From contig NC_083404.1 of NCBI RefSeq assembly GCF_020745735.1, positions 80,537,731 to 80,601,730 of the forward strand: a DNA stretch of 64,000 nucleotides. Direction: 5' to 3'. Source of the DNA: Hemiscyllium ocellatum. Lineage: Eukaryota. Positions 16,705 through 64,000 of this stretch are shown one piece after another. Made by a program: the position numbers and the translations under genes. Within the stretch, counting starts at the first letter, position 1. Every line of letters starts with the position of its first letter. The notes under the pieces are model-generated. The model saw nothing but the letters and a program-made list of their open reading frames with translations, was not told the DNA's origin and made no database searches.

Positions 16705-17075
16705 AAATGATGATAGTACTGGACTAGCAATTCAGACGTTCAAGCCAATGCCATGGGTTCATAGGTTCAAACCTGGCGATACAGGCACATGAAATCTGAA
16801 TTCAATTAACAAATCTGGAATATAAAGCTAGCCCTGATAATGGGGACCACAAAGTTATTTATTGCCTTGAAACCAACAGGATTTACAAATGTTCTTTAGG
16901 GGACAAATCTGCCATCCTTAACCTGATTTAACAACTTGACTGTACACCCTCCACAATGCAGGTGACTTTTTACTGCTCTCTGAAGTAGCCTAGCAAGCCG
17001 GTGGCTCCAAGGTCAATTAGAATGGGCAACAAATGCTGGCCTGGCCAGCAACGCTGTCATCCAATTAAGAAAACA
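16705..17075 (+). mobile_element. SINE-like repeat with tRNA-like head (second family; also at 17335-17640, 49330-49510 on -, and 62455-62795)
   Basis: Shared core ctgccatccttac...ggcctacatg..actccagaccc and 3' gggcaa.aaatgctggcctggccagc across copies. Confidence 0.65.
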
Positions 17076-17334
17076 GTAATTAGTCTTATGTTTAACACAT
17101 TGAAATTATTCCATAAAATAAGACATACACACAAGGTATTACTAGCAATACATAATTTAAAGATTGTTAGAAATCTTACACAGCTCCAAAATCTAGCAGC
17201 TTCTTAATCACATCCTGTTAATTCATATCAACAATGAGTTCATGTTTCAGTCTGTCAACTGCCTTACATCATATTCATTGACTCCTTGCAGACAAAAGTA
17301 ATTTTATTATGAATTTGACAATCTCAGATGGGAG

Positions 17335-18040
17335 GAAGCAATTGTAAAGTATTATGACTAGATTAGAATCCAGAGATTCAGGTAGTGGCCTGAATCCAAC
17401 CAAGCAGATGATGGAATTTAAGTTCAATTAAAAATAAAATCAGAGAATAAAGGTCTAATTATTACAACGACTGAATTCTGTATTGTCGGAAAGAGCTCCC
17501 TTGTTTACTAATACCCTTTGGGGACGACATCTGCCATCCTTACCTGATCTGGCCTACATGGAACTCCAGACCCACAGAAATGTGGTTGACTCTTAACTGT
17601 CCTCTGACATGATCTAGGAAGCCATTCAGTTGCATCAACTGCCAGAAAATCTCAAAATAGAATGAAACCTGATAGACCACCTGGCATCAAAGGCACCAGA
17701 AATGACAATCACAACCCTGCAAAGTCCTCCTCATATCTGAGGCCTAGTGTCAAAACAGAGAGCTGTACTATAATCAGTCAAGCAACAACTTGACATTGTT
17801 GTACACATGAAATCATACATTACTCACAACATCCCAGAAACCATCAGCATCCCTGGATATGCCCAGTCCTACCATAAAGACAGACCCACCAGAGATGGCG
17901 ATGCAGTCATATACAGTTAGGAGCACAATGCCTGGGAATACTCAACATTGATTATTAGGTATCACCTGCATTTCACTGATGAATCAATGCTTCTCCACAT
18001 TGAACACCACGTGGAGAAAGCACCCACAGAGGCACAGATC
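17335..18040 (+). mobile_element. Same SINE-like head continuing into LINE-like sequence
   Basis: Matches 62455-62730, then continues into degenerate endonuclease-like sequence (KQQLDIV...ESY...TISIPGY). Confidence 0.5.
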
Positions 18041-18647
18041 TGGATGGGATTTTTTTTTAAAAGATGATGCATTTTTGGCAATGACAGTCCTGAGAAATGT
18101 TAAAATTCAGATAAATAAAAGGTATCCTTGCACATGAATTATATGAAATAAGTGGGCAGGTACTGCAAGCAATTCAGTAGTTACATTCTCACTTGCATTT
18201 CCTCAAATCTTACAAAAGGAAATACTGAGATGAGGCAAGGTAAAATAGTATTTGTGCACACATATACAGTTATGCTTACTGTTGTGGTGGTTCTGTTTGC
18301 CGAGCTGGGAATTTGATTGACATCATGCCCATAAATATTTGCTTTCTCCACTGCCACTCAGTAACAGCAGTGTTGCTAAGGCTGCTCAGGAGATAACACC
18401 TTTCAAAGTCATGACCGCCAGCATCTAGAAAGACAAGTGCAGCAAATACATAGGAACACCACCATTTGCAAAACACCTTTTAAAGTCACTCAACATCCTG
18501 ACTTGGAAATATACTATGGTTCCTTAAGTGTTGTTGGCTTTGTTCTGTTACAATCTGAAGAACGTGAGAGCAATTCTGGACATGAGTTTCCTATCCAACT
18601 ATGAATAGACAGTGTAGTTTCATTTGATAAAGCCTAGTAAAAGAAGG

Positions 18648-18743
18648 GCAGTCCTGATGAAGGGCTTATGCCCGAAACGTCGAATTTCCTGTTCCTTGGA
18701 TGCTGCCTGACCTGCTGCACTTTTCCAGCAACACATTTTCAGC
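18648..18743 (+). mobile_element. 96-bp Penelope-derived mini-element (family A 3' end) with 15-bp TSD
   Basis: TSD cctagtaaaagaagg at 18633-18647 and 18744-18758; the empty site is present in the opposite arm (19604-19618). Confidence 0.92.
18650..18685 (+). ncRNA. Minimal type I hammerhead ribozyme motif (family A)
   Basis: aguc-CUGAUGA-a-gggc(uuau)gccc-GAAA-CG-UC-gaau; core intact, palindromic ACGU stem III, one mismatch in stem I. Confidence 0.75.
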
Positions 18744-19340
18744 CCTAGTAAAAGAAGGCTTGTTTATTTTCGGATAGGACTAGATTAAAAGAAAACTCAT
18801 TGAGTGTGAATAGTTAGTCCACTTGACACAGACAGTGTAGCATTTACATTATTGCAAGGAGATTTAATGACTTAAGTTGAAGTGAGATTTAAAGTAAGCA
18901 TAACTCAAAGTTTGTGAGAAGATTTGTAGCTCGGGTGCTCGTTGTTGTGGTTTTGTTCCCCGAGCTGGGAATTTGTGTTGCAGATGTTTCTCCCCCTGTC
19001 TAGGTGACATCCTCAGTGCTTGGGAGCCTCCTGTGAAGCGCTTCTGTGATGTTTCCTCCGGCATTTGTAGTAGTTTGAATCTGCCGTTTCCGGTTGTCAG
19101 TTCCAGCTGTCCGCTGCAGTGGTCGGTATATTGGGTCCAGGTCGATGTGCTTATTGATTGAATCTGTGGATGAGTGCCATGCCTCTAGGAATTCCCTGGC
19201 TGTTCTCTGTGAATTCCTGTGAACCCCAATATACTGACCACTGCAGCGGACAGCTGGAACTGACAACCCGAAGCGGCAGATTCAAACTACTACAAATGCC
19301 GGAGGAAACATCACAGAAGCGCTTCACAGGAGGCTCCCAA

Positions 19341-19380
19341 GCACTGAGGATGTCACCTAGACAGGGGGAGAAACATCTGC
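19341..19380 (+). ncRNA. Partly decayed hammerhead motif of the Poseidon-type PLE (mirror copy at 18980-19019 on -)
   Basis: gca-CUGAGGA-u-gucaccuagacaggggga-GAAA-CA-UC-ugc; stem I gca/ugc; stem III palindrome broken (ACAU). Confidence 0.55.
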
Positions 19381-20777
19381 AACACAAATTCCCAGCTTGG
19401 GGAACAGAACCACAACAACGAGCACCCGAGCTACAAATCTTCTCACAAACTTTGAGTTATGCTTACTTTAAATCTCACTTCAACTTAAGTCATTAAATCT
19501 CCTTGCAATAATGTAAATGCTACACTGTCTGTGTCAAGTGGACTAACTATTCACTCTCTCAATGAGTTTTCTTTTAATCTAGTCCTATCCGAAAATAAAC
19601 AAGCCTTCTTTTACTAGGCTTTATCACATGAAACTACACTGTCTATTCATAGTTGGATAGGAAACTCATGTCCAGAATTGCTCTCACGTTCTTCAGATTG
19701 TAACAGAACAAAGCCAACAACACTTAAGGAACCACAATATATTTCCAAGTCAGGATGTTGAGTGACTTTAAAAGGTGTTTTGCAAATGGTGGTGTTCCTA
19801 TGTATTTGCTGCACTTGTCTTTCTAGATGCTGGCGGTCATGACTTTGAAAGGTGTCATCGCCTGAGCAGCCTTAGCAACACTGCTGTTACTGAGTGGCAG
19901 TGGAGAAAGCAAATATTTATGGGCATGATGTCAATCAAGTAGGCTGCTCTGTCCAGGGAAGTGTCAAGTTTGAATGTTGTCAGAGCTTCATACTCCATCA
20001 TGCTCCTGATTCATACCTTGCACGTAGTGAACAGGCTTTGGGCAGTCAGGGTAAGAGTTACTGACTGCAGGATTCTTAGCTTCTCTTGTATCCACAGTAC
20101 TTGTATGGTATATTCAGTTCAGCTTCTCTTTAAAGGCAATCTCAAGGACAGTAATAGATGCATCTGCTTGATGAGTGTCAACATGAGAAATTTGCCTTTT
20201 AGAGAGCTACACATTTAGGATTATTCTAGATGATGTCCAAAATATAACATAAGCAGTGATTTCAGCTGTTAAACTTCCCTTCCTTCTGTCAGCTCTCTCT
20301 GCCTCTTTCCACTTAGAGCACTGATTTATCATGCTTAGTGCTCCTCCGAGAACAGGTTATTCTTAACTCATGTTTGTTGCTGAAACCCTCACCAGTAAGG
20401 GTTAAACATAGACTGTGAGATCTCTAATCTGATTACAGTTTACAGTAGGATTCAACCCAGGAAAACACTGGTTTACTTTCAATAAGGGCTTCACCACCGA
20501 CTGACTTCTGGTGGCAAGTGAACCTAGAGCCTTCTTGATTCCATTATATATGGCAAATAGATTTCCACTGCTGCAGACAGTATCTTTTTTTGACATTGGT
20601 AGATCCAATCCAAGCTGTATCACCCTGTCATTTTCACAACTACTTATTTACTTTCAAGGTATCCAGTGCTGAAACTATTTCGTTTATGTGGTGTGATAGG
20701 TGAGGTTTTGATTTAACAGGTTCACATGGGTCAAAAAGTCTTGCACTTCATTTACTATTCTGACATTAATCAAAGAG

Positions 20778-21771
20778 GAGAAAGTGAGGACTGTAGATGC
20801 TGGAGCTCAGAGTTGAGTGTGTGTTACTGGGAAAGCACAGCAGGTCAGGCAGCATCCAAGGAGGAGGATCAAGGTTTCAGGCATAAGCGCTTCATTGGGA
20901 AGGAGGCTTGTGGGCCAGGGCTGAGATAAATGGGAGGGAGGTAGCTGAGAAGGTGATAGGTGGATGAAGGTGAGGGAGAATGTGATAGGTCAGAGTGGGT
21001 AGTGGTGGACAGGTCCGGAGGGCGGTGCCAAGTTGGGATAATGTGGGGGGGATGGGAAATGTGGAAACATTTATCCCGTGTGGTCCCATGATGGAGTATG
21101 ATGTGTTCTTTCTCCAGTTGTTGGGTGGTAGTGGCTTGGTGGTGGAGGCGGCCCAGGAGCTGCAAGTCCTTGACTGCGTGGGAGGGGGAGCTGAAGTGTT
21201 CAGCCACAGGTCGGTGGGTACGGGTGTCCCAGAAGTGATCTCTGAAACGATCCACAGAAGGCGACCTGTCTTCCCAAAATAGATGTCATCTAATGCATCT
21301 GGTGTGGTCTCCTCTACGTCCCCTCCCCCTCTATCAAGGACATGCAGTTCCTGGGCATTCTCCACTGCCAAACCATTACCACCCGAGGCATGGAGAAAGA
21401 ACGCCTCATATTCTGCCTTGGAACCCTGCAACCACATGGGATAAATGTGGAGTTCAAAAAACTTATTTCCCATTCTCCCATTCCTCCCCACCCCTCCCAA
21501 ACCAACATTATCCCAGTTCCAAGCTGCCAACTCAGCACCACCCTGCGGACCGGTCCATCAGTCCCCTGTGACCTATCACCTTCTCCCTCACCTTCATCCA
21601 CTTATCACTTTCTCAGCTACCTTCCCCCAAACCCCACCCCACTCCCATTTATCTCTTGGCCCCAGCCCACAAGCTTCATTCCTGAAGGGCTTATGCCCAA
21701 AATGTTGATTCACCTGCTCCTCTGATGCTTCCTGACTGCTGTGCTTCCCCAGCAACACACTCTCCACTTTG
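20778..21771. mobile_element. Head-to-head inverted pair of Penelope-like (Neptune-type) GIY-YIG/3'-end fragments, family A
   Basis: IYFGKTGRLL / DRFRDH...PVAEHFSSPSH...(-) and MQFLGILHCQTITTRGMEKERLIFCLGTLQPHGINVEF (+); possible TSD at(c/t)aaagag at 20769-20777 and 21772-21780; both hammerheads decayed. Confidence 0.85.
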
Positions 21772-23599: not shown

Positions 23600-23870
23600 T
23601 CTGCCTACTGCTAATGGTTTTTAAACATTGTAACTATACCCGTATTCACCACTTCCTCTGGAAGTTCATTCCACACATGAACCACTGTGTAAAACAAAAA
23701 TTGTCTCACATATCTTTAAATCTTTCTCCTTTCCACCTTAAAAATGCTTGAAATCCCCAGTCCTAGGAAAAAGATCTCTGCCATTCACTTTATCTATACC
23801 CCTCAATATTTTATAAATCTCTATAAGGTCACCTCTCAACCAAGTCTGTTCACATTATTCCTACATTCAC
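23600..23870 (-). mobile_element. CR1 LINE 3' fragment
   Basis: ttcaccacttcctctgg...ttttataaatctctataaggtcacc, shared with the other CR1 copies. Confidence 0.75.
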
Positions 23871-25773: not shown

Positions 25774-26432
25774 CATGATTTGGAGATGCTGGTGTTGGAC
25801 TGGGGTGGACAAAGTTAAAAATCCACAACACCAGATTATAGTCCAACAGGTTTAATTGGAAGCACACTAGCTTTTGGAGCGACGCTCCTTCATCAGGTGA
25901 TTGCGGAGGGCTCGATCGTAACAGAATTTATAGCAAAAATTTGCAGTGTGATGTAACTGAAATTATACATTGAAAAATTGATTGTCTGTTAAGCCTTTCA
26001 TCTGTTAGAATACAGTGATAGTTTCATTTCTTTCATGCGTAAATCACAAAACCCTTCTTTTTAAAGTTGCATTCTTGGGTTAGCTGCTAACAATGGTGAT
26101 AGCTAGACAATATGTTGAAGCGAGACAACATGTTGTCTAGCTATCACCATTGTTAGCAGCTAACCCAAAAATGCAACTTTAAAAAGGGTTTTGTGATTTA
26201 CACATGAAAGAAATGAAACAATCACTGTATTCTAACAGATGAAACACTTAAAGACAATCAATTTTTCAATGTATAATTTCAGTTACATCACACTGCAAAT
26301 TTTTGCTATAAATTCTGTGTTACGATCGAGCCCTCCAATATCACCTGATGAAGGAGCGTCTCTCCGAAAGCTAGTGTGCTTCCAATTAAACCTGTTGGAC
26401 TATAACCTGGTGTTGTGTGATTTTTAACTTTG
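25774..26432. mobile_element. Inverted pair of Penelope-like 3' ends (family B): arms 25810-26117 and 26126-26432, plus a 36-nt tail at 25774-25809
   Basis: ~307-bp reverse-complementary arms with an 8-nt spacer; each arm contains a hammerhead motif. Confidence 0.92.
26342..26376 (+). ncRNA. Intact minimal type I hammerhead ribozyme motif (family B)
   Basis: cac-CUGAUGA-a-ggag(cgucu)cucc-GAAA-GC-UA-gug; stems I and II pair, palindromic AGCU stem III. The mirror copy at 25865-25899(-) has GAAA>AAAA. Confidence 0.8.
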
Positions 26433-26439
26433 GAGAAAG

Positions 26440-26772
26440 AGAGGTAGGGACAATGAAAAAGCTGGGTATTACTTGTACAGAGAACTACTGCAGAAAACAT
26501 GCAAAGACATGCCAGAGGATGCCTGGAGGCCTGGCACTCCAACCACAATGCCGTGAACAAACACATAGATCTAGATGCTATCTATCAACCCCTCAAAACA
26601 AACAGGAAATGATATCACCACAAACCCCAGGAACCCCATCCAGGAGAAAGATAGAAATAGAAAGCAGGAGCCAACAGTTTCGCTTCACTTGGAAGTTGCC
26701 ACTGATGTTACCTAGCCAGGTAATGAAACGTCTGGATATCAAACCTACAGGTCAGCGGGCAAACCTACACAC
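26440..26772 (+). mobile_element. Penelope-like (Poseidon-type) GIY-YIG C-terminus and 3' end with decayed hammerhead (26699-26735)
   Basis: Frame reads RHARGCLEAWHSNHNAVNKHIDLDAIYQPL; cca-CUGAUG[-]-uuacc(uagcca)gguaa-u-GAAA-CG-UC-ugg. Confidence 0.8.
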
Positions 26773-27758
26773 TACTGCAGAATTCAGGGGTGTAGATTAA
26801 CCTATGTTGTTTATATTAACTAGAAACATTTGATGAAGTCTTACATACAAAACTGTTAATAGTTAGAAGGCCACAAATTGAGGGCAAATTACTGACGTGG
26901 CCACAAATTTGGTTACGTGATAGGCGAACAAAGTAGGTATACTGTGTAGGTACTCGAATTGATAGATCCCAAAGGGACAGGGCCTATTATTCATATTATT
27001 CATTAGCTACCTGTAAAATGGCAGAACGCGCCATATGTCCAAATTGGGTGATGACACAAAGTTAGGGTGAATTGTTGACAGTACAGAGGTTAGCATAAAG
27101 TTAAAGAGATATTAATACACTAAATAAATGGGCAAAACATAGCAGATGTAATCAAGTATGAGGTTTTCCATTTTAGACTGAAAAAAATAGATCAGGTACT
27201 TTCTAGATGATATGAATTTAAATACACAAAGCCCAAAGAAATTTGGGGATTCAGTTGCATAGATATTTAAAATGTTACAAACAGGTACAGAAGATAAGGA
27301 GGCTAATGGAATGTCTGCCTTTCCACCTAAGGTACTGGAGGATGCAGAAATTATACAAAACTCTGGTTTGATCCCACTTGGAGCACTGAGCGCACATTTA
27401 GGAGTCATATAACACAGAACCAGACCCTTCGGTCTAACTCGCCCTTGCCAACCAAGTTTCCGAAACTAAACTCGTCCCTTTTTCCTGCATTTGACCCATA
27501 CCCCTCCTCTAAACTGTCGGATTCATGTACCTATCCAAACACCTTTTAAATATTGTAACTGTATTTGCATCTACCACTTCTGACAGTTCATTCCAGATGT
27601 GAACCATCCTGCAAGGGAAAAAGGTTGCCCCTCTGGTTCCTTTTAAATCTCTCCTCTCACCTTAAAAATATGCTCCCTAGTTTGGAGCTGCCCTATCCAA
27701 GGGAAAAGGCCTTTGCTATTTACCTTATACATGTCCATCATTTTATAAACCTCTAAGG

Positions 27759-28314
27759 TGCAATGATGCTGTCACTTTAACAAGATTATTTTGTCCTTGG
27801 GTTTTTTCTTAAAAAGAGACACCGTAAAGGCAGAAGTGTTGAGGAAGAACCTAATTTAACGATGGCAGGGGAGTGCCAATTTCTCCCAGTCCAGGTTTTT
27901 TTCTAGTCTGGCTTAGTTGTGTCAGTCACAAGATGCTGGAGTCCAGGAAGATTGCAAACTTCAGCAGATGATTCCTGACTGACTTTGCTCTCTGAAGTCT
28001 CTTTGGATATTGTTTCCTCCTATCTGCAACAATCTGTGTTTCAATGCACCTTTTTGCCATGGTCTGTGTTTATGGGATATTACTGGATTGGAACGGTTCC
28101 TGAGTTAAGTTGCTGTATTAGGGTGGTTAAGTTATTCTAAATTCGGTTTTCTTTTGTGTTTCAACTGTGGTGTTTAAATAAATTGTTTTGCATAAAGCGG
28201 AGTGATTTAGCCATCATACCCGAGATATCCACTTCACATCTGCCTTTAAAATAAGAAAAAGAAAGAGTCTAGGCTACCTTAAAATATTGACGGCATTTGG
28301 CCTGGTCCATTACA
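27759..28314. mobile_element. Solo LTR (Gypsy-like), 556 bp
   Basis: TGCAATG...CATTACA inverted termini, 4-bp TSD AAGG (27755-27758 and 28315-28318), internal AATAAA at 28177. Confidence 0.75.
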
Positions 28315-32979: not shown

Positions 32980-34290
32980 TGTGACGAGATGCCACACAAC
33001 AGACTGCTGCATAAGGTATGGATGCATGGCGTTACGGGTAAAGAGTTAGCATGGATAGAGGACTGGTTGACTAACAGGAAGCAAACATGTGCTATTCTGG
33101 CTGGCAATGACGAGTGGTGTATCACAGGGATCAGTGTTGGGACCACAATTACTCATAATTTATATAGATGATTTGGAGTTGGGGACCACGTGTGCTGTGT
33201 CAAAGTTTGCAGATGACACTAAAATGAGTGGCAGAGCAAAGTGTGCAGAAGACTGGAAAACTTTGCAGAGGAATATAGATACTTTGAATGAGTAGGCAAA
33301 GGTCTGGCAGATGGAATACAATGTTAATAAGTGTGAAGTCATCTATTTTGGTAGGAGTAACAGTAAAAAGGATTACTACTTGAATGGTAAAAAGTTGCCG
33401 CATGCTACAATGCAGAGGGGTGTCCTTGTGCATGAATCACATAGGGTAAAAAATGAGATCTGCAGATGCTGGAGATCACAGCTGAAAATGTGTTGCTGGT
33501 TAAAGCACAGCAGGAAGGGCTTATGCCCGAAACGTTGAATTTCCTATTCCTTGGATGCTGCCTAACCTGCTGTGCTTTAACCAGCAACACATTTTCAGCA
33601 TGAATCACATAGGGTTGGTCTGCAGATACAACAAGTAACTAGGAAGGCAAATGGAATTTTGTCTTTTTTTGCTAAAGGGATTGAGTTTAAAAGTAGAGAG
33701 GTTATATTGCAGTTGTACAGTGTGCTGGTGAGGCCACATCTGGAGTACTGTGTGCAGGTTTGGTCTCTTTACTTGAGAAAGGATGTACTGGGACTGGAGG
33801 AGTTACACACGAGATTCACTGGAGAATCAAAGGTTGATTCCAGAGTTGAGGAGGTTGACTAGTGAAAAAAGCCTGAGTAGACTAAGATACCATTCATTGG
33901 AATTCTGATTGGGGGGGGGGGGGGGGTTGGTATCTTATAGAAATAAAAGAAATTATGAAGGGAATAGGTAAGATAGAAGTGGAGAGGATGTTTCCACCGG
34001 CAGGTGAAACTAGGACAAGATGGCATAGCCTCAAAATTGGAGGGAGCAGATTATGGACTGTATTGAGAAGGAACTTCTTCACCCAGAGGGTTGTAACTCT
34101 ATGGAACTGCTTGCCCAGTGAAGTAGTTGATGCTACTTCAGTGAACGTTTTCGAAGTAAAGATAGATTTTTTTTAAAACAATAAAGGAATTCAGGGATTA
34201 GTAAGTGGTTCTGAGCCCACGAAAAGATCAGCCATGATCTTATTGAATGGTGAAGCAGGCTGGAAGGTAGCCTACTCCTAGTTCTTATCC
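32980..34290 (+). mobile_element. CR1 LINE interrupted by a PLE insertion; G16 run at 33911-33926
   Basis: TSGVSQGSVLGPQL...KFADDTK and LVRPHLEYCVQVW. Confidence 0.9.
33448..33597. mobile_element. Short inverted Penelope-like insertion (family A) with 16-18-bp TSD
   Basis: TSD (gc)atgaatcacatagggt at 33430-33447 and 33598-33615; a tailed copy on - followed by a tail-less copy on + that starts at hammerhead stem II. Confidence 0.9.
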
Positions 34291-38154: not shown

Positions 38155-38357
38155 CACTTCTTTTGATGAGGGGGCAGTGCTTCGAAAGCTTGTGATTCCA
38201 AAAAAATGTTGTGTTTCAACAAATAAGGTTCCTGATGAAGAGCTTATGCTTGAAACATTGACTCTCCTGCTCCTTGGATGCTGCCTGACTGGCTGTGCTC
38301 TTTCAGCACCACACTCGTCGACTTTGATCTGCAGCATCTGCAGTCCTCACTTTCTCC
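38155..38357 (+). mobile_element. Two adjacent PLE 3'-end fragments (family B-like, then family A), each with a decayed hammerhead
   Basis: uUGAUGA-g-ggggc(agu)gcuuc-GAAAGCUU-guga at ~38163-38195; CUGAUGA-a-gagc(uuau)gcuu-GAAACAUU at 38232-38259; family A tail ends at 38357. Confidence 0.75.
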
Positions 38358-42231: not shown

Positions 42232-43927
<1,696 letters not shown>

Positions 43928-51450: not shown

Positions 51451-54400
51451 CGTTATCACTAAGAACAGAAAAAAATACACAAACATTTACTGCTGAATTC
51501 AACATAAACATGTTTATGACAGAAATTATCAAAATACTTATGCCATCTTATGAATACTCTTAACACAAATTCTATGTTAACATAATGAATTTGTCATCCA
51601 TGAGACATTCCATTTCTCAATTCTTCCAAGAGAAGAAAAATGAAAAACAATGTTACTTGCTGTTTATTGAACATACTCACCATTCTGTTCTCTAAGACTA
51701 CCAAGCTATAACAGCAGGCCTCTTGATTTTTTTTAAACAGCCCTCAGATTTTATTAGAGGAACATTTATGCTTAGAGATTTGCAGGCTACTTAAATAACT
51801 TGATGCCATACAGAAGTACAACATATAACCTCTCAGTACAGCTTATACATTATGTGAAATTGTGAATGTAATGTTAAAAAGCTAATGTGATCATTCTCTT
51901 CAGCTGCTTGAGAAACAAGGACATTGAAACATTGGAAAGTAGCTCCACTAAAAGTATTTCCACAGCTGAAATTATGAAGAGTTGAGAAATATGGAGGCTT
52001 GAGAATGCAAGTGTAGCAACTGTACAGTGATCTAACACCAGTATGCAAGCTAGCTGACAACATAGAAAAGGTTCACCGTAAATACTCATTTAAATTAAAC
52101 TATGACAATAATCTAAGCTCAAGCTAGTAAAAAGGGAACATGAGGGCTTTTCCCAGGAGATTCCTTAAACAAAAATTCATCAACTTGTGCAAGGGATTTA
52201 TGGTCAGTGAAGTGGAAGAACAACACCATAAAATGGAGGCAAAGAGGTCAATCATTCAGCTCATTGAACCTCTAGAGCACTCTTCAGTAAAGAATTCCAG
52301 ATTCACTACCTGCTGGAAGAAGAAAATCCTTCTCTGTACCCTAATTGAGTAACCCCTTATTCTAACATTATTGCCCCTGGTCTTCGACTACAGAAATAAA
52401 GAGATTAAGTGCTCGGCACAAGTGTGCTAAGACTGTGAATTTGTGAAAGGGAGAATGATTTAAGGTTTAACCTTGCCAAAAATAGCTTGCCAGCACTCTA
52501 GCATTTTACTTATTGCTTATGCTGTGGAGCAGGTGAGCATTTCTACTATGTATTTTTAAAAGTAAAAATTGGTCTTTAGATTGTGAGTGTTTAGATTGGA
52601 AGGAATAAGGCAAGGTACAGAGTATGTATTTAATATCCTTTGACCCAGAGAAAATGAGCATAAAGACAGCAATCTAAGGACAAGTCATGATAAGGTGGGA
52701 TGTTCCTCCTGTGCCATGTGCAACATCAGGGACACTTCCAGTGTGCAGGGTGACCATGTGTAGGTTGTGTATCCAGCTGCAGCCAGTAGAAATTTGTGGT
52801 TTGGATCTGGAGCAACACCTTGGGTATCTGAAAAGCTGAGATATAGTGGTAACACATACAATGAGGTGGTCACACCTTGTGTAAAGAGTGCAGAGGCAGA
52901 AAATAAATGTGAGATCACCACTCAGACTAAAAAACACCATGCAGTTTATGTCAGAGGACCTTGAGACTACTTCTGTCGAACAAATTGCGGATATTGTTGG
53001 GGGAAGAAAGATTTTCAGTGGAATGCAGTGACATCTAAGTCAATGACACCAGAATTGGGTAAAAAAAACAAGGAAATGACAGATCAATTGAACAACTATT
53101 TTAATTGCATTTGCACAGAAGACAACACAAATAATGATCCAGAAATTGGATGCAGTGCATTTCAATATTCCTATATAAAAGGCTGATGTATGTAATCAAA
53201 GTACATGAGGTTTGTGGTAATATACTGAAGTGGAATTAGAGTTGGTTAGCATGCAGGAAACAGTAGGAATAAATGGGTTGGTTTTGGAGAGAAAGGCAGT
53301 GACAAAAGAAGATACCACAGTTATCAATGTTGGGCCTTAACTATGCAAGACATGTATCAACAATTTGGGTGAAAGAATCATGTTGTGGCTGTACAAGACA
53401 TTGGTTAGGCCACCTTTGGAATATTGTATGCAATTCTAGTCTCCCTCGAATAGGAAGAATGTTGTGAAACTTGAAAGGGTTCAGAAAAAATTTAGTAATG
53501 TTGCCAGGGTTGGAGGGTTTGAGCTGTAGGGAGAGGCTGAAAGGTCTGGGGCTGTTTTCTCTGGAACGTCAGAGGCTGAGGGGTGACCTTTTAGAGATTT
53601 ATAAAATCATGAGGGGTATGGATAGCATAAAATGACAAAGTCTCTTCCCTAGGTTGGGGGAGCCGAGAACATGGGCTTAAGTTTAGGATGAGGGGGAAAG
53701 ATTTAAGAATCAAAGGGACAACTTTGTCACGCAAAGATTGGTGTGTGTAGGGAATGAGCTGCCAGAGGAAGTGGAGGAGGCTGGTACAATTACAGCATTT
53801 AAAAGTCACCTGGATGGGTAGGTGAGTAGGGAAAGTTTACCGGGATATGGGCCAAGTGCTGGCAAATGGGACTGGATTAATTTAGGAGATCTGGTCGGCA
53901 TGGACAAGTTGGACTGAACGGTCTGTTTCCATGCTGTACATCTCTATGACTAATATAGCCTAGTTTACTGACAACGTAAAACTAGGTGAGATTACAAGTG
54001 CTAAGGTCGATGGATACAGGCTTCAGAGCAATTTAGACAAGTTGAGCGAATGGGCAAATGCATGAATGAGTGTGAAGTTGTCCACTTTTGTCACAAAAAC
54101 AATTGAAAATATTATTTAAATGATACATGAGGAAGAGCTAACATAAAAAGGGATCTTGGTATCCTTGTTCATTGGCGATTCAGGTCAGCAAACAGTTACA
54201 AAGGTGAACATGATGTTGGTGTTACTGCGAGATGATGAGCATCTAGGAGCAAGGAAGTGTAACTGTAGCTGTACAAGGCCTCAGTGAGCCCAGTTGGATT
54301 AGCTGCGCAATTTTAGTCTCTGTGCCTAAGAATATAATTGCCTGGGAGAATACAGTTAAGGTTCACCAGTTTGATTTCCTGCCAGGACAGGTATGTTGTA

Positions 54401-54543: not shown

Positions 54544-54668
54544 AAACAATGACTGCAGATGCTGGAAACCAGATTCTGGATCAGTGGTGCTGGAAGAGCA
54601 CAGCAGTTCAGGCAGCATCCAAAGTGCAGCGAAATTGACGTTTCGGGCAAAAGCCCTTCATCAGGAAT
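54544..54668 (-). mobile_element. PLE 3'-end mini-insertion (family A variant) beginning at its hammerhead
   Basis: Hammerhead, then ggatgctgcctga..tgctgtgctcttccagca body, then ccagcatctgcagtc tail. Confidence 0.8.
54633..54668 (-). ncRNA. Minimal hammerhead motif, core intact, stem I weakened
   Basis: auuc-CUGAUGA-a-gggc(uuuu)gccc-GAAA-CG-UC-aauu. Confidence 0.65.
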
Positions 54669-63739: not shown

Positions 63740-64000
63740 AGATGTTGTGAAACTTGAAAGGGTTCAGAAAAGATTTACAAGGATGTTGCCAGGGTTGGAG
63801 GATTTGAGCTATAGGGAGAGGCTGAACAGGCTGGTGTTGATTTCCCTGGAGCGTTGGAAGCTCGGGGGTGACCTTATAGAGGTTTACAAAATTATGAGGG
63901 GCATGGATAGGGTAAATAGCAAAGTCTTTTCCCTGAGGTCAGGGAGTCCAGAACTAGAGGGCATAGGTTTCGGGTGAGAGGGGAAAGATATAAAAGAGAC
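63740..64000 (+). mobile_element. Young CR1 LINE fragment running off the window edge
   Basis: DVVKLERVQKRFTRMLPGLEDLSYRERLNRL...GDLIEVYKIMRGMDRVN. Confidence 0.92.

Follow-up and report, generated by a model that had tools for sequence, protein, structure and literature searches.

How does a retroelement insertion come to contain an inverted copy of the host DNA that lies beside it? This question is raised by a locus in Hemiscyllium ocellatum, within a stretch of 64,000 nucleotides of contig NC_083404.1 (assembly GCF_020745735.1, positions 80,537,731 to 80,601,730 of the forward strand) that we call the window. Between two copies of a 13-bp target-site duplication, the locus carries a pair of inverted copies (arms) of what we identify from protein homology as a Penelope-like element (PLE), together with a reverse-complemented copy of the adjoining right flank. 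We read the region from 17900 to 20300 and added a repeat search; all coordinates are positions in the whole window. The arrangement is a real and derived structure in this lineage, and it probably arose when a growing strand switched between the two arms of an otherwise ordinary PLE insertion. The features are listed below in order along the window; B and C are two related species.

18268–18280, plus strand: left copy of the target-site duplication, 13 bp, AGTTATGCTTACT, identical to 19455–19467
18281–18315, minus strand: outer tail-less element end, 35 nt, matching each arm (18941–18975 and 19385–19419) at 31 of 35 positions
18313–18315: TTG microhomology at the join of outer piece and inverted flank, readable as element (…AATTTG) and as the reverse complement of 19936–19938
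18316–18892, minus strand: inverted host-flank copy (source 19468–19935), split by a 96-nt repeat, 98.2–98.5% identical to the right flank
18633–18758, plus strand: dispersed mini-element of 96 nt (18648–18743) with a 15-bp target duplication, CCTAGTAAAAGAAGG, assigned by the repeat search to family D4
18893–18905, minus strand: third copy of the target duplication, inverted, AGTAAGCATAACT, the reverse complement of AGTTATGCTTACT
18906–19210, minus strand: left element copy, 305 nt, with its sense on the minus strand, delimited by protein homology and by the divergence of family contigs after 19210
Parts of the left copy in minus-strand sense: tail, 18906–18940 (35 nt); stop codon, 19000–19002; C-terminal end of the open reading frame (ORF), 19003–19209
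19211–19224: filler at the head-to-head junction, 14 nt, a near copy of 19189–19198 (GAATTCC(C)TG)
19225–19454, plus strand: right element copy, 230 nt, with its tail at 19420–19454 (35 nt), 97.8% identical to the reverse complement of the left arm
19455–19467, plus strand: right copy of the target-site duplication, identical to 18268–18280
19468–19938, plus strand: original host flank, the source of the copy, continuing into 19939 onward as in species B and C

Taken as a whole, the locus is a palindrome with arms at 18316–19135 and 19225–19935, hinged on the element pair and bounded by a second junction at the TTG of 18313–18315. To the left of this trinucleotide the element sequence and the reverse-complemented flank diverge. 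The outer piece starts 35 nt inside the outer ends of the arms, exactly at the tail-less site. Between 18316–18905 and the reverse complement of 19455–19935 there are six substitutions and one 2-bp indel in about 480 nt, and the element arms (18906–19135 and 19225–19454) differ at 5 of 230 positions, with identical 35-nt tails. The structural features of a fold-back inverted duplication are present: the inverted segment adjoins its source, the hinge is an inverted repeat, and the second junction has microhomology. When folded as single-stranded DNA, the central 641 nt gave -362 kcal/mol (z = -100). The 64-kb window contains no second copy of this PLE family. Two wider searches, a word-indexed protein search with the frame of the untranslated region and a pattern scan of metagenomes, yielded no matches. 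A preliminary description made from the sequence alone had already recognized the target duplications, the tail-less end, the TTG junction, the inverted flank with its third duplication and the two tailed arms. All of these are in the sequence, with the outer piece measuring 35 nt and not 34.

The identity of the element was examined through the minus-strand ORF at 19266–19000, which we searched with phmmer against 1.8 billion representative proteins. Residues 17–88, which span the left arm and the sequence between the arms, match P0001, P0002 and P0003 at 79–89% identity with E values down to 5e-31 (P0001), and all three proteins are from the brownbanded bamboo shark (Chiloscyllium). More distant matches include P0011, with an RVT_1 domain followed by GIY-YIG, and P0013, with GIY-YIG. 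The studied segment aligns just downstream of the GIY-YIG motif of both, over …QRTAREFLEAWHSSTDSINKHIDLDPIY…. Searches with tblastn placed a homologue match at 19209–18952 in the left copy, and P0002 covers 19226–19357 in the right copy. What remains of the ORF is its last 69 codons (19209–19003, minus strand). Pfam gave no score on the local ORFs, whose fragments are too short.

The same homology redefines the centre of the palindrome, where 89 nt had been described as a spacer. Contigs of other copies of the family leave the window sequence after 19210 and go on to encode …DNTTIIGQAK, which in the homologues stands before QRTAREF. Because the family contigs diverge at this point and continue the ORF upstream, we place the end of the left copy at 19210. 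The supposed spacer reads instead as mostly element coding sequence that continues the left arm (19136–19210), followed by the 14-nt filler at 19211–19224, for which no homology to the family was found.

PLEs are characterized by an inverted 5'-truncated copy and by a tail of 30–40 bp at one end (PMC8557442), and a PLE has been shown to cleave and extend both target strands from two reverse transcriptase (RT) start sites separated by the tail (PMC11167929). The locus has a one-sided tail of 35 nt, an adjacent inverted 5'-truncated copy and a 13-bp target duplication. Homology to proteins with RT and GIY-YIG domains, the one-sided tail and the target duplication, which we checked against empty sites, all bear out the earlier assignment, and they identify the insertion as an endonuclease-positive PLE with a C-terminal GIY-YIG domain.

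Complex PLE structures trouble whole-genome shotgun assemblies, especially those made from short reads (PMC8557442), and no single contig that we placed spans the whole structure. Such a palindrome might be an artefact of a long read that was chimeric or folded back, or of the other haplotype having been incorporated in inverted orientation. We considered contigs from four public runs placed on 17000–21200, of which the H. ocellatum runs X1 and X19 represent two studies. One H. ocellatum contig covers 17580–18315 with zero differences and ends exactly at the TTG. Another covers 18313–18508, also with zero differences, and carries the left-arm variants at 18391 and 18395. A third (18744–18930, no differences) begins in the inverted flank, crosses the inverted duplication and ends in the inverted tail, and a fourth was placed at 19909–20801. 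Contig ends at 18315 and starts at 18313 recur in both studies. A de Bruijn graph would behave in this way if the 30-mer at 18286–18315, which is element sequence, recurs elsewhere in the genome and the 30-mer at 18313–18342 has two left neighbours, one for each arm.

Read depth and sample distribution agree with these contigs. Contigs from the arms have about twice the depth of the flank in X1 (90 versus 45) and 1.4–1.7 times in X19. The junction 60-mer at 18285–18344 was found in H. ocellatum runs only, in at least five samples (S1, which is possibly the source sample, and S13–S16 of the second study; two words were sampled). The arms differ, moreover, by 11 substitutions, one indel and a 96-nt insertion that has its own target duplication, a pattern that argues against a folded read or haplotype. 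We conclude that the structure is real and regard an artefact as very improbable. The structure is apparently widespread in the species and germline.

Precise empty sites were found in both related species. In species B, one contig of 988 nt joins 17582–18267 directly to 19455–19755 with a single 13-mer, and in species C one contig of 959 nt joins 18267 directly to 19455, again with a single 13-mer. The filled structure is derived in the H. ocellatum lineage. Since the sites are empty in B and C, the insertion and the duplication both occurred after the split from these species. The flanks differ from those of B and C by about 4–5% and the palindrome arms differ from each other by 1.5% (11/709), which on a clock places the duplication roughly one third of the way back to the split. 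The contigs of H. ocellatum, B and C also bear out, as the preliminary description had claimed, that the inverted flank copy is a real and derived feature hinged on the inverted arms. The 96-nt repeat is present in the left flank copy only, with its empty site in the right arm at 19604–19618, and was thus inserted after the duplication.

The relationship among the three element pieces gives a first indication of how the duplication was made. It had been noted earlier that the arms share states unlike those of the outer fragment, and this holds at three positions, where both arms are alike and the outer 35 nt are different; the arms differ from each other at 2 of the 35. The arm-specific states are a T at the equivalent of 18946, CC at 18958–18959 and an A in GAAACATC, which both arms read; 19269 and 19235 hold states of the right arm. 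In the outer piece, the two adjacent positions agree with P0001, whose read-through 'IPSSANRTTTT' has the corresponding Ala. Because of these shared states, the outer segment of the left arm looks like a copy of the right arm and not like a continuation of the outer piece. A Poisson estimate for three changes in 35 nt by mutation in place is 0.02–0.1; given that the split of about 4.5% is older than the insertion, such an origin is unlikely, and the difference more likely goes back to two different template RNAs.

The inner part of the arms has a different character. Their innermost 49 nt hold 3 of the 11 mismatches (P = 0.034), and at 19091 and 19125 the right arm is derived relative to the Chiloscyllium homologues (R to P, and R to stop). 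These mismatches would suit a left arm of chimeric origin, with the original left complementary DNA (cDNA) as its inner part. We also observed that arm mismatches fall in tight doublets (18391/18395, 18514/18516 and 19087/19091, and 18953/18962); three pairs within 4 nt among 11 mismatches have P = 0.016 by simulation. The doublets may have come from error-prone synthesis when the palindrome was formed, or from conversion or repair that acted patchily between the arms.

These features are best accommodated, at a probability that we put at roughly 0.7, by an arm-to-arm strand switch in an ordinary double-primed PLE pair. A cut in the bottom strand would have primed the tailed cDNA that gave the right copy (230 nt), and a cut in the top strand 13 bp away would have primed a tail-less cDNA of about 270 nt, now represented by the outer 35 nt and the inner left copy up to 19210. 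The two cDNAs would have met head to head at the templated 14-nt filler. A nascent strand would then have switched between the inverted homologous arms, by fold-back or U-turn. Its template would have been the end of the right arm with the 35-nt tail, followed by the target duplication and 471 bp of the right flank. Copying would have halted at a site resembling the element's own cut site, after which the TTG microhomology would have brought the strand back to the final 35 nt of the tail-less arm. The predicted product is a palindrome of about 715 bp per arm with a chimeric left arm, the outer part a copy of the right arm and the inner part the original left cDNA. Afterwards, the 96-nt repeat would have entered the left arm and the arms would have drifted to about 1.5% divergence.

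The order and orientation seen here can be reached by three routes. The switch could be a U-turn during replication, it could follow breakage of the left copy, with priming by fold-back and end joining through microhomology, or it could accompany completion of the second strand. An arm-to-arm switch fits because the longer element copy is contiguous with the duplicated side. The same geometry bears on an alternative raised in the preliminary description, the capture of the flank during reverse transcription. In snap-back junctions of R2, the 3' end of the cDNA primes DNA-templated synthesis on the cDNA itself and sometimes on nearby target DNA (PMC11371274). A simple snap-back of this type was tried as a candidate and rejected, and with it the simplest form of the capture proposal. 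The loop of such a snap-back adjoins the priming flank; here, however, the loop (19136–19210) is continuous with the left copy, which is on the duplicated side, and the candidate fails unless the centre was later flipped.

More elaborate forms of self-copying at insertion can be drawn up. The cDNA primed from the right flank would snap back and copy its whole arm, the target duplication and the resected flank, or, in a variant, the hairpin-capped end would be opened off-centre at a third cut site. The product would then be joined through TTG to a left end bearing a 35-nt abortive cDNA, and the arms would have been identical at birth. Both steps have precedents, in R2 cDNA snap-backs that continue into target DNA (PMC11371274) and in L1 hairpin and hyper-resection fold-backs (PMC11702581). 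The presence of the tail and target duplication on both arms is as expected, and so is an outer breakpoint that resembles the element's cut site. Identity at birth would also be consistent with the arm-divergence comparison proposed in the preliminary description, in which the element part (5/230) and the flank part (6/482) do not differ significantly (Fisher P = 0.35). This comparison is underpowered for dating and has no power to separate the models. However, a simple snap-back puts the longer copy and the loop beside the true flank, the reverse of what is observed, and self-copying needs a flip of the centre or an off-centre nick as a remedy. The innermost arm region is more divergent than the remainder (the P = 0.034 given above), and a second, different RNA is still needed for the outer 35 nt. 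We consider self-copying unlikely in either form.

The orientation of the centre, and the two tailed arms each with a target duplication, would also be explained if sister chromatids or homologues had been bridged. In such a bridge both right ends would prime tailed cDNAs (305 and 230 nt) that are joined head to head, and the sister would then be broken 484 bp in and joined to the left end. Inverted L1 bridges between sister chromatids are documented (PMC7058536; PMC11702581, model 2), and a third endonuclease-like cut would have a role in this scheme. Its price is at least three breaks on two chromatids and the rescue of the remaining fragments, and both arm cDNAs would have to share three states absent from the left-end cDNA. 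There is no direct evidence for a bridge, and we judge it less probable still than self-copying. Off-centre hairpin opening and the sister bridge both fit the geometry but need more steps than the strand switch.

When the strand switch took place is a separate matter. The preliminary description had an inverted pair established by insertion and later seeding a replication template switch. The arm switch with TTG return fits the geometry, as described above; the later timing is not established, and a switch at the time of insertion fits equally. A chimeric left arm does not separate the two, because both timings predict it. By analogy, flank inversions of L1 and R2, templated flank, snap-backs and fold-backs would favour an event during completion of the insertion (second-strand synthesis or gap repair), to which we give about even odds, and documented template switching between inverted repeats would favour later replication or repair, for which our expectation is somewhat lower. 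The small remainder is left to other occasions.

The outer breakpoint offers a hint on this point. Both target cuts follow ACT, the duplication reading AGT…ACT. At the outer breakpoint (19935–19939) the bottom strand reads GCCTACT^TG, and 8 of 11 positions agree with GCTTACT^TT, the target cut in the top strand. The frequency of such a match is 0.002 per site in the window, or about 0.02 once cut positions and comparisons are taken into account. At a third endonuclease nick, fold-back copying would run off and stop, which would point to an event at insertion. The target duplications of other repeats of the 96-nt type were not cleanly readable and gave no information on cleavage preference. As a separate observation, the 11 host nucleotides to the left of the duplication (18257–18267, CACACATATAC) and the end of the tail (19444–19454, CACAAACTTTG) are alike at 6 of 11 positions, including the first four. 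This likeness may be due to chance or to weak pairing of the RNA end with the target.

Several considerations weigh against the strand switch as we have reconstructed it. The centre could since have been flipped by recombination between the arms, in which case the argument from geometry would be weaker. The three states shared by the arms could stem from a different source RNA and not from copying. The excess of inner-arm mismatches consists of three mismatches under a partition chosen post hoc, in a region that is richer in CpG. The likeness of the outer breakpoint to a cut site was likewise noticed post hoc, and the cleavage preference of the family itself is not established. The data are short-read contigs only, and a 57-nt junction unitig is not among the contigs listed. 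Finally, the comparison of orthologous loci recommended in the preliminary description yielded the empty site in B and C and not the simple inverted pair: neither an allele nor an ortholog with the inverted repeat and without the duplication was seen, both related species being empty. A simple-pair allele would read from 18250 through 18315 into TGTTGCAG.

In most respects the insertion resembles canonical endonuclease-positive PLEs of the Poseidon/Neptune type, such as PAc of Anolis (PMC8557442, PMC11167929). It has an ORF that likewise ends in a GIY-YIG endonuclease region, the same inverted 5'-truncated copy beside a forward copy inside one target duplication, and the same tail at one start site only (35 nt here) with an AC-rich RT start region. 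In both, the target strands are cut after a short A-Y-T motif, which is ACT here and ATT in PAc (PMC11167929). The locus departs from the canonical arrangement in having a second, inverted set of tail, duplication and 471 bp of flank, which separates the tail-less end from the remainder of the left copy.

A further likeness to PAc lies just after the ORF end, where its template RNA has the same CUGAGGAUG…GAAAC(G/A)UC string. Compared by eye, 19344–19377 reads CTGAGGATG…(19 nt)…GAAACATC, which parallels cugaggAUG…(20 nt)…gaaacguc of PAc RNA (PMC11167929). In this hammerhead-like core, helix II pairs poorly, and the cleavage triplet is AUC in both arms. With Rfam, no hammerhead was found at the gathering threshold or at E values up to 10, whether the search covered the region, an 831-nt sub-region or the whole window. 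In this respect the studied element differs from the canonical ones: its hammerhead escapes detection by Rfam, helix II appears decayed, and the ribozyme has probably been lost to decay. A 3' fragment of a different PLE family lies at 26487–26780 on the plus strand (tblastn match 26487–26597), with an ORF end, …CLEAWHSNHNAVNKHIDLDAIYQPL…, that is 59% identical to P0001. The string CUGAUGUUACCUAGCCAGGUAAUGAAACGUC, about 100 nt downstream of this ORF end, can be aligned with the studied element's hammerhead-like string; its 6-bp helix II is intact.

Outside PLEs, the closest parallels are fold-backs and flank inversions of L1 (PMC7058536; PMC11702581), which also have cDNA at the hinge of an inverted host duplication and microhomology at the junction. 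Models for these events invoke self-annealing of the cDNA, 5' resection and endonuclease sites at breakpoints (PMC7058536; PMC11702581). The L1 cases are somatic or experimental, mostly kilobases to megabases in size, and end in dicentrics or terminal deletions, whereas the present duplication is interstitial, germline and 484 bp long, and its hinge consists of two inverted cDNA copies and not one. Snap-back 5' junctions of R2 in PRINT similarly have antisense element sequence fused upstream (PMC11371274), with the difference in loop position discussed above. Rearrangements of the DUP-TRP/INV-DUP (duplication–triplication/inversion–duplication) type (PMC4352052, PMC11293582, PMC10766186) share an inverted duplication with a junction hidden in an inverted repeat and a second junction with microhomology. 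However, they involve repeats of kilobases and segments of 10 kb to megabases, compared with arms of 195 bp and a duplication of 0.5 kb here, and in our case the inverted repeats were created by the retroelement insertion itself. The PLE insertion signature has been described before, retroelement-hinged fold-backs are known for L1, and rearrangements that combine inverted repeats and microhomology are known in human disease. Our literature searches yielded no description of a PLE pair in which the tail, the target duplication and about 0.5 kb of host flank recur in inverted orientation, in a form shared by several individuals of a species and with empty orthologous sites.

Other repeats in the window were recorded alongside. 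The 96-nt mini-element has a canonical-looking hammerhead core, CUGAUGA-A-GGGC-UUAU-GCCC-GAAAC-GUC, in which Rfam does not detect a ribozyme. Five related copies lie in the window (20820–20895, 21683–21759, 33514–33599, 38230–38313 and 54584–54666), the other window copies of the core sit in longer units resembling short interspersed elements (SINE-like), and its k-mer depth is in the millions in all three species. At 25810–26432 lies a second palindrome, in which arms of about 305 nt flank a centre of 8 nt. Its two arms share the terminal sequence …AACTTTG, which is like that of the studied element's tail, and each has a CUGAUGA…GAAAGC motif about 85 nt from its end. From these features it is probably a tail-out inverted pair of another ribozyme-bearing element; an inverted flank copy was not seen at this palindrome. 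Residues 117–176 of P0017, a protein whose N-terminus resembles a PLE endonuclease, match six loci (2727–2834, 23747–23833, 27661–27795, 42998–43138, 53510–53707 and 63795–63971), which look like another dispersed repeat family. Very high-copy repeats flank the studied locus itself at 17423–17704 and 20666–20947, with k-mer depths of 10^5 to 10^6 in the three species, and they give rise to spurious joints in the contig layout.

To our knowledge, PLEs are the least understood class of retrotransposons, and we know of a single in vitro study that shows a PLE cutting and extending both target strands. What can fail after double priming is recorded at this natural insertion with nucleotide resolution: its empty sites are verified, it preserves two independent cDNA ends, and it includes a copied flank, a junction with microhomology and a filler that was templated. 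The locus ties PLEs to the fold-back and inverted-duplication outcomes of LINE-1 and R2, with germline transmission and persistence of such events. A bolder proposal, which we hold doubtful, is that PLE integration regularly makes fold-backs that copy tens to hundreds of base pairs of flank and are ended by a third endonuclease cut of the ACT^T type; PLEs would then be a systematic, element-encoded source of small host palindromes in shark genomes, and the locus a preserved snapshot of an intermediate. If events of this kind are recurrent, genomes rich in PLEs would steadily gain small palindromes and local duplications from PLE pairs, and the pairs would also be a known hazard for assemblies.

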